The notes below the pieces were generated by a model. That model saw only the letters and a program-made list of their open reading frames with translations, had not been told where the DNA came from and ran no database searches. A stretch of 64,000 bases of DNA from Anaeramoeba ignava BMAN (Eukaryota > Protista > Anaeramoebae). Location of the stretch: positions 144,496-208,495 of the forward strand of contig JAPDFW010000107.1 of NCBI GenBank assembly GCA_028826165.1, written 5' to 3'. The translations under genes were made by a program, and so were the position numbers. Numbering within the stretch: the stretch's first letter is position 1; the number at the start of each line of letters is the position of its first letter. Of this stretch, positions 33,838-48,800 are shown in pieces.

Positions 33838-36800
33838 AATGAAGGAAATAAAGTAAAATTTCTAAAGAAAAATTGATAATAATTATTATTATTTATTCAT
33901 TCTTAATTTATTATTTTTCAATTCCTTTTATTTTAATTTCAAAAAAAAAACACAAATTTAAATTAATTAATTTTGAGTTAATAAAAAATTTAAATTATTC
34001 TTTTTTAATTTTTATCAATTCAAAAACAAAAATTATTTAATTTAACAAATTAATTCTTTTTAACTAATTTTAATTTATTCTTTATTTATTTTTTTTATTC
34101 AAATTTAGGAAACTTTATTTCATTACTTTTCAAAAAAGGAACCAATTGATTTTGAAATTTTCCAAATTTTATTCAAAAAAAGATCTGAATGGAATAAACA
34201 AGATGTATTTATTTTTATTTAATAATAATAATTAATTTTAAAAAAAATTTAATAATTTTGATTATTTTCAAATTTAAATTTATCAAATTTATTAATATTT
34301 ATCAATATTAATATTAATTTTTATTTTTATTAACAAAAGAAAATTCAATTTTAATTTATTTTAAAATTATTAAATTTTTTTTTCTCAAAATTTATAAAAA
34401 ATAAAATAAAAATCGGGAAGTTTTTCCATTTTATTTTATTTTGTTGAAATTGAAAAAAAAAATGATAAGAGCAGATAATCAACAAATTAAGAATTATCTG
34501 AAATCAATCTCAAATTTATTTTATTTCCCTTTTTTTTTCTGAGATTAAAAATTGAATTATTTCTTTTTCTGATTTTTTATTACAATTTCCTTTTATTATC
34601 TTCTTTTTTTTTTTTTCCCATAAAGAAGATATTTATTTTCTCTGATTTTGATTTATTATTTAAAATAAAAAACAGAATTTAAATTTCAAAAATTAGAAAA
34701 TTTGTTTTTCCCAAAATTGAAAAAATTACCCTTAGAAGAAATTCACAATGAAAAAAAAAGAATTACTTAATCTCTTTAATCCTTTTCATTTTTTTTCTGG
34801 TTGATAATAAAGAATTAATTTTGTGGAAAACATAATTTCAAAATGAAAAATATTTTGAATAAAAACATTTTGATACTTTTCTCAATTTTACATATTTTCA
34901 TTTCCTTTTTTTTTTTTACAAAATCAATATCATTATTTCTCCCTTATGTAAGAAGAAGAAGAAAAAAAAATTATATTGAATTATAATATTGAAATTTTGA
35001 GATAGATTTGAGAGAAAAAGGAAAAAAAAAGATTTTATTTTTTTGAAAATTTCTTTCTTCCTTCATTTAATATAATTATCTTTTCGATATCTTTGAAAAA
35101 AATTCCATTTAAATGAAGTAATAGAACATTAAAGTGATAAAAATTTCATCTTAAGAGATTCTTTGAGTTAAAAAATTCATAATCAAAATATTCTAATTTG
35201 TTATCTATTTTTCAAAAATTTTTATTTAAACATAAAAAAATTTGATGGAGAATTTTCAATTCCTTTAGTTGAATGAAATAATCAAAAAATTCATCAACCA
35301 AAAAAAAACAATCATTTCCATTCCTTTTCTATTATCTCTAAAATAATTTTCAAGTTTTCGAGTTACTTCTTCTTCTTTTTTTTGTTCATTTTTTTTTGTA
35401 ATTAATATTTATTTCAAGAAAACATGAATTAAAATAACAGAAATATATCCTAAATCTAATTAATCTTGATTTAAGATTCAGAAAAAAAAGAATATGAATG
35501 AATGAATAAATAAATAAATTTTCAATCCTTATTTACAATGAACTTTTAATAAATTTAAGATTAATTTATTTGTATCTTTTTTTTGAAAATAAAGATTGAT
35601 TTTTTTTATGTAAATATTTCTTTTCTTTTATTATTGAATGAATTTTTATAAAAATTTGTTTTAAAAGAAAGAAATTTGAATATTTTCAATTCAAAAAAAA
35701 ATAAAATAATAAAAAGAATTAAGATGTAAAATTTGATTCAAACATTTTAATTATTCATATTCTCATTATTTTTGGGATTCATTTAAATCATACTTCAAAA
35801 TTAAGGGGAAACAGAAAAAATTATGAAATGAAGAATATCCCTTTTTTTCATCAAGAATTTTATTCTATTTTTATCAACAAATAAATCAATAAATCAATAA
35901 ATCAATAGATTTACGATGAATATTAATTAAGAAAAAAAATAAGAAATAAGAAATAAGAAATAACAATTTTTTTCAGATTATTTGATTAATGTTACTTATT
36001 ATTTTGATTTTTGAGAACTTACTTTTCTTCATTTTTTTCTCTTTTTTTTTGATTATCATTTATTTTTTTTTTCATTTTGAATATTATCTTGATTTCTTTT
36101 TTTCATTATTGTTATTATTATTATTCTCCAAAAATTCATAAAAATTATCATCTTCAATGAAACTTTCAAATATGAAAATATATTTATTTTGTTAATTATT
36201 CACTTAAATATTTGATATTGAAGAATTTTTTATCAGAATTTTTATTTATATTTAAGATATTTCAACTTCTAATCTTCCACTTTTCTTCCATTAATTTGAA
36301 AAGAAAAATATTTTTTATTTTTATTAATCAATTAATTTCCCTCATCTCATACTTTGATAATTTACTTTAATTCATTTTTTTTAAAATTTCTGTTAATTAT
36401 TCTTATAAAAAATGAGGTTCATTAATTTCATCAATTATAAAGAGTAAATTTTACTTTAATTCTGAATAATTAACTAATCAATTAAAAAAACTTTTTAAAA
36501 ATTTTGAATAATTGAGAGAGATAAATTATGTATCAATTTTGAGAATAAATAAAAATTCAATAAATCATCTACAAAAGATTTTGGAATGTATGATAATTTT
36601 TTTTTGTAATTTTCAATAAGTATTGGGAAATTGAATTATTATTTTTTTTATGATTTCTTTCATTTATAAGACTATCTGTTAATTGTTTTACTTCCTTTTC
36701 TAACTCTTGATTTATTGATATATCTTCTTTATTCTTTTTTGGATTTGTAAAGAAAATAGATTATATTATCATTATTATTATAATTTTGAAGAGAGATTTT

Positions 36801-45800: not shown

Positions 45801-48800
45801 ATATTTTATATTTCTAATTATTGAAATATTGAGAATTGATTTCTGATTTAATTTTTTTTTGATTTCTTAATTCTTCTCATTATTATATCTTGAAATTATT
45901 ATTTTATTGATTGATAATATTTCTTTTTTCTTTTTTTTCTTTTTGATTAATATTTATTTTTGTTTTTGAGATAATTTTTATTTTAATTTAATTTTAATTT
46001 TTTATTTCCAAAAAAAAATGATTTATATTTCTTATTACATTATTTTGAATATTAAATATGATTTGAGTATTAAATCATATATGTTTTTTTTTCAATTTTA
46101 TTTGTTTATTTGATTAAAATATCCTCATCTTATTATATATTTTTATTTCCTTTCCTAATTTTTTTTCAATTATTTAATTTATTTTATTCATAATTTGATA
46201 TTGATTTATATATTTCATATATTCTCTAATAACATTTAATTCTTCTATTTTTAATTTATATTAATATTTTTATTATAATTGTTAATTTATTGAGTATATT
46301 TATATATATATATATATTATTTGATAAATATTTTTATTCCTCTTTGATTTATTTCTTAAATTAATAATAATTTTCAAAATATATTCTTTTTCTCAAATAT
46401 ATTTCTTGTATTATGGAAATTGTTATTCTTTATTTTAGAAATATATTTTTAAATTTATTTCTAAATTTTTTTTTTGAGTTTTATTTATTCTATTTAATTA
46501 ATTAATATTAATAAATAAATTATATTTTAAATTTAGAATTGATTTATTTTTGTGAATTTAATTCATTTTATTATTTCAATTTTCTTTCTTTTTTAATATT
46601 TTTAAATAAATTTTGAATATTTTTTTTATTTGATATTTTATTCTTTTCATTTTTAAAATTTCAAAAAAAAAAGAGTTAATATATTATTTTTATTTTTATT
46701 TTGAATAATTCCTAATAGATGAAAATTGATAATATTATTAATAATATCAAATATATTAAGAAATGATTTTCTGATAATTAATTTATATAAATTTAAAATT
46801 TGTAATATTTTGTTTTAATTAATTTTTAATTTAATATTTTTGAATTTCTATATTTAATTTGATTTTTTTTTTCTTTAAATTTATATCTATTTCCTAATTT
46901 TATAAAAATAAGAAAAAAATTTTGATATTTCTTGTTATAAATTATTTATTTATTATTTTTATTATAAATTTTTAAATAAGAATAATTAACACTTTTATTT
47001 ATAAATTATTCAAAATCTTTTTATTTTTATTTGAATAATTTTAATTTAATTTTAATTTAATTTAATTTAAAGAATTACTTTTTTTTTGTATTATTTCTTT
47101 AATCTTATTTAAAATATTATTTATCATATTTTTTTTATTGATTAGATTGAATATTTTCAATTTCTTTCTTTCTTTCTTATTAATTAATTAAATTTAATTT
47201 TTTTGATAAATTATTTTTATTATTTTGATTTTTTTTTTCAAATTGAATTTATCTTGTTTTGTAATTATCTCTTATCTTAAATATTTTAACTAAATAAATA
47301 TAAATATAAATATAAATATAAATATAAATATAAATATAAATATAAATATAAATATAAATATAAATATAAATATAAATATAAATATAAATATAAATATAAA
47401 TATAAATATAAATATAAATATAAATATAAATATAAATATAAATATAAATATAAATATAAATATATAAATATAAAAATATATAAATATTTCATCTTATAAT
47501 TATAAAAATATAAAATATCTCTATATATATTCATAACCTTATAAATATAAATATATATTATTATAAAATATCTTCAATTAATTTAATAATTTAATAAATT
47601 TAAATATATTTATTAAATTAAATTAAATTAAATTAAATTAAATTAAATTAAATTAAATTAAATTAAATTAAATTAAATTAAATTAAATTAAATATATTTG
47701 GAAATTAATGGAAAATCTTAATAAATATACAAAATTTCCCCAATTTAATTATTTTATTTTTTTTTCAAAAACAAAAAACAAAAAACAATTTAAATCTAAT
47801 CTTTTCTTTTTAAATTAAAAATAAATAATAAATTAGAGAGTAATTTTATTTATTATTTTAATTTGATTTTCAAAAAAAACACAAAAAAATATTATTTCAA
47901 AAAAAATTATAAATTTTTTTAATTTTAAATAACAAAAAAAAATATAAGAGAAAATTATTTAAAATATAAATTAAAGAGAAATTTATTTTTTAATTTAATT
48001 TAATTTAATTTAATTTAATTTATTATTTCAAAACAAAAAAAAGTGGTCTCCAGTTCATTATTTATGTAGGAATGAATCAATTACATTTGATATGATTAAA
48101 TTATTAGTTGATAATGGAGCTAATTTTAAATTAAGTGGAGTAAGTTTTTAATTAATCAATTAATTTATTTTCTTTTTCAAAATAATATTAATTTTATAAG
48201 AAGATATTTCATTTCCATTTTTAAATAAACATAAACATAAACATAAACAATATTTTTATTTCAATTATTTTATTAATTAAAACAAAACAATTTTGAATTT
48301 TTTTTAAAATTAATAAGAATATAATCAAAAAAAAAGAAATAAATTTTAATTATAATTTTAATTATAATTTTTATTCCAAAAAAAAAATCAAAATAATATT
48401 TATGTTTATTATTTGATTATTATATTTCAATTTATTTTAATCAAAAATAAATAAATTCAATTTCAAATTCAATTTAATATTCAATTATTTTCCAAAAAAA
48501 AGAATGTTTTCTTTTTAATTCATTTTTTTTTTAAAAATTTTCAACTTTAAAAATTTGAAAAGAAAAAAAAAAGAAAAAGAAAAATTTAAAATTAATATTT
48601 AATTAATTAATTATAATTCCTCTCTCTTTTTTTTATTTTGTTTTTATTTTATTCAGATTTACAAATTTAATTCAATTTTGTTTTATTCTCAATTCAAATT
48701 CTTCTTTCTTTTTTATTTTATTTTATTTTATTTTATTTTATTTAAAATTTTGGATATTAAATCAAGAAAAGAAATTTATTAATTTATTAATTTTATAATT

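Follow-up and report, generated by a model that had tools for sequence, protein, structure and literature searches.

Single-codon exons in the ankyrin-repeat loops of a predicted kinase gene family in the protist Anaeramoeba ignava

The subject here is a 64,000-nt stretch of the Anaeramoeba ignava BMAN genome (contig JAPDFW010000107.1; hereafter the window) and the gene that it carries, in which the loop residues of ankyrin repeats appear to be encoded one codon per exon. In ankyrin proteins generally the beta-hairpin is part of the binding face, and LoopDARPins combine randomised hairpin-tip positions with a long inserted loop. The ankyrin scaffold fold has been described, as has the placing of variable residues on its binding face in DARPins (PMC9611651). 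Animal and plant microexons (1–27 nt) are GT-AG exons down to 1–3 nt that are often missed by annotation and are known to occur as adjacent pairs (PMC8831610). The micro-exon genes (MEGs) of schistosomes contain 10–20 such exons each, mostly of 15 nt (the range is given as 3- or 6–81 nt), and encode secreted proteins that carry a signal peptide and are alternatively spliced (bioRxiv 10.1101/2023.06.21.545858). In brown algae, candidate immune receptors of the ROCO-LRR and NB-ARC-TPR types have one phase-0 exon per repeat, undergo gene birth and death, and show diversifying selection on a binding domain to which a signalling domain is attached (PMC3341825; PMC11378527).

The A. ignava family is like the MEGs in having many consecutive short, mostly frame-preserving exons in fast-evolving genes, and unlike them in that nearly all of these exons are exactly 3 nt, run to as many as 31, and are confined to the loops of a folded repeat. 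MEG products are secreted, built almost wholly from microexons and without a globular repeat domain, whereas the window gene starts with a RING-kinase exon and has its microexons only in ankyrin loops. Against the alternative splicing of MEGs, with skipping of central exons, the only A. ignava transcript seen (P0103, described below) includes every unit. Nor does the family look like a Dscam-type mutually exclusive cluster, as all units are included in the paralog behind that transcript and neighbouring introns are not duplicates of one another. The brown algal receptors share with it the phase-0 exon per repeat, the expanded family and diversifying selection, the last resting here on few sites and not seen in compact paralogs; their unit is the whole repeat and single-codon exons are not described in them, whereas in A. 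ignava the repeat is ankyrin, the variable loop is split codon by codon, and the architecture is RING-kinase-ARM-ankyrin in place of a ROC-COR or NB-ARC domain with LRR or TPR repeats. Animal and plant microexons are isolated or paired and conserved; those of A. ignava number more than 1000 candidates of 3 nt, in long and fast-varying runs. DARPins and LoopDARPins offer the likeness of an ankyrin scaffold with variable binding-face residues, with the differences that they are synthetic libraries and that the A. ignava family is natural, has no helix residues on microexons, and binds only putatively.

To judge from sequence, an ankyrin repeat of this family would be divided between a phase-0 exon of about 96 nt, which encodes both helices, and a series of 3-nt exons, one for every hairpin-loop residue. 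The ankyrin exons of the window gene and the units between them are the following.

34109..34204 (+): ankyrin exon A, 96 nt, phase 0, ending in QD
37464..37466 (+): single-codon exon AAA (K), triplet 1
38178..38180 (+): single-codon exon GAT (D), triplet 1
38260..38262 (+): single-codon exon GGA (G), triplet 1
38365..38463 (+): ankyrin exon B, 99 nt
38666..38668 (+): single-codon exon AAA (K), triplet 2, a tandem duplicate of triplet 1
39952..39954 (+): single-codon exon GAT (D), triplet 2
40030..40032 (+): single-codon exon GGA (G), triplet 2
40135..40233 (+): ankyrin exon C, 99 nt, a duplicate of B
40514..40516 (+): single-codon exon AAA (K), triplet 3
40599..40601 (+): single-codon exon TTT (F), triplet 3
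40696..40698 (+): single-codon exon GGA (G), triplet 3
40780..40866 (+): shortened ankyrin exon D, 87 nt, included in the NCBI model KAJ5069235.1
41383..41448 (+): linker exon E, 66 nt, included in the same NCBI model
41533..41541 (+): possible 9-nt exon (KKE) with a GTT donor
41699..41800 (+): ankyrin exon F, 102 nt, ending in QD
41960..41962 (+): single-codon exon AAA (K), triplet 4
42080..42082 (+): single-codon exon TAT (Y), triplet 4; mostly Y or F here in paralogs
47837..47839 (+): single-codon exon AGA (R), triplet 4; K or D in near-identical copies
48044..48139 (+): ankyrin exon G, 96 nt
51519..61994 (+): run of 13 single-codon units, at 51519 R, 51646 W, 51781 A, 52648 TGA stop, 53016 H, 56279 P, 56396 D, 56517 W, 56590 D, 56716 F, 58165 Y, 61872 Y and 61992 D; homologous paralog loops have 7–13 units, the long ones mostly ending in D
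52648..52650 (+): the stop-codon unit TGA of that run, its splice context among the strongest; inclusion would truncate the protein
62071..62166 (+): ankyrin exon H, 96 nt

An initial annotation of this DNA had listed twelve AG-NNN-GTA units reading KDG, KDG, KFG and KYR, and all twelve are found in that order on the forward strand; the ankyrin exons flanking these triplets do end in QD followed by GT, as it had stated, and are phase 0 and open. The four gaps that it named were all located, but triplets 1 and 2 lie within one tandem duplication (184 of 186 and 296 of 306 positions are identical between their modules), so that only three triplets are independent. Its span of 34109–48139 does hold such units but closes too early, 13 more following before the exon at 62071–62166, and 40780–41800 proves to be a shortened repeat with linker exons and not a triplet gap. 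The extent of the phenomenon had also been understated, since runs reach 13 units in the window gene and 31 in a paralog. The tandem duplicate of triplet plus ankyrin exon occupies window positions 37285–40250, where (ATCAAA)n arrays separate the K and D units; short duplicated modules resembling it are seen at locus L030.

Direct evidence that such units are spliced comes from a paralog. P0103, retrieved with a profile of 38 single ankyrin exons, is a transcriptome-derived protein (EukProt EP01156, A. ignava Trinity contig c20457_g1_i1) whose ankyrin exons are separated by 14 and 8 residues, and these 22 residues match 22 of the 22 AG-NNN-GT units that two gaps of the C73 paralog contain, following the genomic order with none missing or extra. 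One of the matched units is a Met codon with a GTG donor, absent from a GTA-based scan. Given the residue frequencies of the family, the chance of such agreement is about 1e-23. Single-codon runs are spliced in whole in at least one gene, and because P0103 includes all 14 and all 8 units, strict pick-one use is excluded in that gene. The Trinity cluster of P0103 holds no second isoform, which is weak evidence, and homolog searches found neither further transcript-derived members of the family nor a transcript-derived protein for the window copy. The genome-based NCBI models of the family, KAJ5069235.1 for the window locus among them, omit the units and join the large exons directly, giving a period of 32–33 residues with no hairpin; in related ankyrin proteins from other sources the period is often 35, that is, 32 plus a triplet.

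The pattern recurs in the paralogs. One ankyrin exon used as a query gives 150 genome matches, many clustered as repeats, and near-identical copies lie on at least 7 other contigs. In the paralog loci analysed (about 195 kb), between 2 and 31 three-base units in a row connect one 96-nt phase-0 ankyrin exon to the next, and the median intron between units is 75 nt, in agreement with the genome-wide mode of 76 nt given in the supplement of the A. ignava genome paper (PMC11550330). Between ankyrin exons, with the window included, 425 units were counted on the sense strand versus 5 on the antisense strand, and each of the other spacings from 0 to 12 occurs 2–24 times versus the 425 at 3 nt. Unit density is 7.7 per kb within ankyrin spans versus 0 across 20 kb of upstream sequence. 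Over the whole assembly (42,843,398 bases, 147 contigs), the strict pattern matches 1075 times at 3 nt, 50 times at 4 nt and 49 times at 6 nt.

The units also read as codons, and their surroundings read as introns. Only 1 of the 425 is a stop codon versus about 40 expected (P = 2e-17); G makes up 35% of first codon positions versus 5% in introns, second positions are also G-rich, and third positions are 95% A+T. The AG and GT flanks are set in intron-like sequence, in that the introns between units are depleted 7-fold in internal GTA and AG is excluded from their last 20 nt. These introns are placed only at codon boundaries and only in loops. Occasional 6-nt units (GG, LL) amid the 3-nt runs, seen at L031–L033 and L036 (C71, C20), suggest that the intron between two codons was lost or absent there, and the longest run seen consists of 31 consecutive single-codon units in one loop, without a stop (L030:4549-6695, on G000:C104).

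The enrichment is also seen within the window itself. The comparison with other spacings and the opposite strand that the initial annotation had called for gives 12 sense versus 2 antisense AG-NNN-GTA in 34000–48300; other spacings there yield 0–2 each, the exception being spacing 2 with 6 matches, of which four come from the CAAG-AT ends of ankyrin exons before GT. Local block shuffles of this span gave a mean of 3.1 sense units and a maximum of 10 in 500 shuffles versus the 12 observed, and over the whole window 36 matches stand against 13.95 +/- 3.5 expected, with none of 100 shuffles reaching 36. The judgement of the initial annotation that chance was an unlikely cause is thereby supported, as is its central claim of genuine consecutive single-codon exons, for which the 22 of 22 residues in the paralog transcript protein, the strand and spacing enrichment, the depletion of stops and the intron hallmarks all argue. 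We are close to certain that the single-codon units of the window are real, and homology to paralogs supports its four triplets.

That the large exons encode ankyrin repeats is supported by Pfam matches above cut-off for Ank, Ank_2 and Ank_3 in P0102 and for Ank_3 in P0103, together with the TPLH-type motif and a helix-helix-hairpin period. Designed ankyrins match the family at 7e-8, and the loops align with the hairpin that precedes TPLH. The placement of the loops in the hairpin rests on this alignment, the AlphaFold single-sequence model having a pLDDT of 40.

Loop length and sequence differ widely among paralogs, and loop ends are conserved by position. The residues are rich in K, D, Y, F, W and R. 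Paralog loops homologous to the 13-unit run of the window often start with R or K and end with F/Y-D, and the last loop often has I, V or T as its first residue and G as its last. Among five recent copies, unit 1 of the long loop is AGA in 5 of 5, unit 2 is W, L or V, unit 3 is A, I or P, and unit 10 is F or Y; the unit at 47837 is R, K or D. Amino-acid change in the loop codons of recent duplicates is fast: in four such copies there are 7 substitutions at 12 loop-codon sites, all 7 amino-acid changing, versus 40 of 1290 intron sites (3%) and 1 of 96 sites in ankyrin exon G (P about 1e-7). Loop differences among compact paralogs include no synonymous change (0 of 21). An origin of loop units by recent tandem duplication of an intron plus codon was considered and found no support, adjacent introns being no more alike than unrelated ones (mean z 0.58 vs 0.55).

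The exons upstream of the repeats, and a transposon in one of the later introns of the gene, are the following.

29869..30868 (+): first coding exon of the host gene, RING finger and Ser/Thr-type protein kinase domain (Pfam Pkinase 8e-46), with a donor at 30869
30936..32549 (+): eight ordinary exons, coiled coil and ARM-like region, found by tblastn to paralog proteins and with consistent phases
32541..32549 (+): last of those eight, a putative 9-nt exon with a GTT donor
54106..55572 (-): PIF/Harbinger-like DDE transposon with terminal inverted repeats, in the intron between the H and P units (Pfam DDE_Tnp_4 4e-24; HTH_Tnp_4 weak)

The first coding exon is 57% identical to paralog P0011, and the RING models of the Pfam scan match it below their curated cut-offs; ARM_LRRK2 matches paralog P0009 weakly. 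The ordinary exons of 30936–32549 contain no 3-nt unit. On the basis of phases and paralog models, we infer that the exons from 29869 onward belong to one transcript, which would make this a RING-kinase-ARM-ankyrin gene. An exon-by-exon check shows an open frame of about 856 codons, which runs from the ATG at 29869 up to the TGA unit at 52648. The contig stops 1.8 kb past ankyrin exon H, and the 3′ end of the gene therefore lies outside the view.

The window copy is a bloated member of its family. Its introns have swollen to 0.1–5.7 kb through simple repeats and the transposon, whose transposase is split into two open reading frames (ORFs) of 169 and 121 aa. The 5.7-kb intron between the Y and R units contains about 1 kb of (AAT)n at 43930–44950 and (TAAATA)n at 47290–47460. 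Among matches to its pattern, the TGA context was found only in this copy. Selenocysteine was considered for this unit and seems unlikely in a variable loop. Because of the swollen introns, the transposon and the TGA unit, the window copy may be truncated after its sixth ankyrin exon or decaying; it may otherwise depend on skipping the TGA unit. Elsewhere, at L028:7004 in the C61 duplicate, an ankyrin exon seems to have shifted out of the frame of its sister copy, and further family members would therefore be decaying as well.

How, then, should these units be read? It is likely, in our assessment, that they are real GT-AG spliceosomal one-codon exons forming hypervariable binding loops in a receptor-like family, and a good case can be made for full inclusion of the units as the main form, which for most of them is inferred. 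The possibility that they are chance motifs in AT-rich introns between large exons that join directly, as KAJ5069235.1 and the NCBI models of paralogs have it in omitting them, is close to negligible: such models lack the hairpin and fall short of the 35-residue period common in relatives, P0103 contains the very residues in question, and every enrichment test goes against chance. A different proposal is that the long runs are a splice-encoded library, with units skipped in combinations or one chosen per position to give hundreds to thousands of loop variants per gene, as in Dscam or the schistosome genes. Every unit is phase 0, and any subset therefore keeps the frame; a plain repeat would call for 3 units and the window run has 13, skipping would bypass the TGA unit, and the loops are rich in the K, D, Y, F, W and R noted above. 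We nevertheless hold such a library to be improbable, given that the only transcript seen includes 14 of 14 and 8 of 8 units and its cluster, for what little that is worth, shows no second isoform, that splice sites of middle units are no weaker than those of end units, that loop ends are conserved at specific positions, and that there is 1 stop in 425 units; strict pick-one use is further contradicted by neighbouring units that are not duplicates of each other.

It could also be supposed that introns simply piled up, non-adaptively, between loop codons because loops tolerate them, with the variation reflecting relaxed constraint. In the compact paralogs loop pN is near intron divergence, and long 3-nt arrays of unassigned nature occur at other loci, both of which would fit. 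Loop substitutions in recent copies are about 19-fold above the intron rate, however, so relaxed constraint cannot be their source, and introns lie at codon boundaries and in loops only; we rate this account as poorly as the splice library. A better prospect, and one compatible with the reading of the units as real binding-loop exons, although we still place it short of an even chance, is that the architecture is genuine in the family and the window copy is a decaying duplicate, truncated or not expressed. A TGA in a strong splice context, the sole stop among the 425, would be so explained, as would introns of up to 5.7 kb filled with simple repeats and a transposon, the existence of several near-identical copies, and the failure of the searches to find a transcript-derived protein; the frame open from ATG to TGA, the intact splice sites, and between-copy differences in loop codons that are amino-acid changes only speak against it. 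More doubtful is an extension in which codon-sized exons are themselves the unit of diversification, loops being edited residue by residue between copies through selection, conversion or a targeted mutator, with some units also skipped in combinations to give many loops per gene. It is important to stress what weighs against the binding-loop interpretation itself: RNA support comes from one assembled transcript of one paralog, at the protein level, and what an assembler puts out is the main path; the window copy is broken if all of its units are included, as its TGA unit shows; the comparison of duplicates draws on a small sample of four codons, selected in part once variation had been seen; in compact paralogs the loop pN of 0.064 is about that of intron divergence and of ankyrin-exon pN, with no acceleration seen there, so that acceleration is shown for recent copies only; and receptor function is an analogy drawn from architecture.

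If the units are one-codon exons as we favour, splicing would probably be intron-defined and ordered. Introns of about 75 nt that are poor in G and have few decoy sites would help intron definition, and removal of the upstream intron first would join the 3-nt exon to a long exon, so that it need never be recognised alone. With one codon per exon, a change of splice site or a crossover would add or remove one residue, and since each unit is phase 0, a loop could gain or lose it without a frameshift. The introns would stretch the distance between neighbouring codons about 25-fold, easing codon-level recombination between copies, and gene duplication with selection would then produce a genome-encoded repertoire of variable binding surfaces. 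Such proteins would probably act inside the cell as sensors, linking a variable ankyrin surface to kinase and RING domains, with bacterial or viral ligands as a speculative suggestion; we would put a sensor role of the RING-kinase-ARM-ankyrin proteins at about even.

Several observations outside the family deserve mention. Arrays of 3-nt units about 70–80 nt apart, with near-identical splice contexts, occur at C1:1057922-1068390 (-), C1:942329-942798 (-), C1:409308-413058 (-) and C1:1796389-1797781 (+); these arrays, like the other bloated copies of the window gene, are known from short pattern matches alone. The first two consist mostly of hydrophobic codons (I, M, L, F, G), unlike the ankyrin loops, and could stem from a membrane protein that is spread over one-codon exons or from a tandem repeat. 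At G000:C87:253742-254794 (-), seven 4-nt units of the same content and context form a possible array of frame-shifting microexons, or a repeat. P0001, P0006 and P0016, all A. ignava NCBI models, are ankyrin-BTB-like genes with 32-residue repeats and no hairpins, and the same microexons have probably been missed in this second family. Finally, an ORF at window positions 5724–7184 (-) has an FHA-like N-terminus and a RING finger, and is CHFR-like by eye.

Our literature search, which did not cover most subscription journals, found no paper on long runs of single-codon exons or on Anaeramoeba microexons, and the A. ignava genome paper with its supplements (PMC11550330) makes no mention of microexons. 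The chemistry is that of ordinary GT-AG splicing, and the architecture is extreme and has no description in the literature searched. One transcript with 14 and then 8 successive 3-nt exons, and predictions of up to 31, go far past the described cases that we found. Such runs allow a direct test of how a spliceosome deals with exons on which donor and acceptor complexes cannot fit together, and of whether splicing is ordered. Because public A. ignava gene models skip them, the loop residues of a large family, probably more than 1000 exons, are missing from the databases. Should residue-by-residue editing of loops between copies turn out to be true, a unicellular eukaryote would possess a system for diversity that resembles antibodies. 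Overall, intron boundaries surround the fastest-varying residues on the ankyrin binding face, which suggests that this protist, a host of bacterial symbionts, reaches receptor diversity by a hitherto unknown route.

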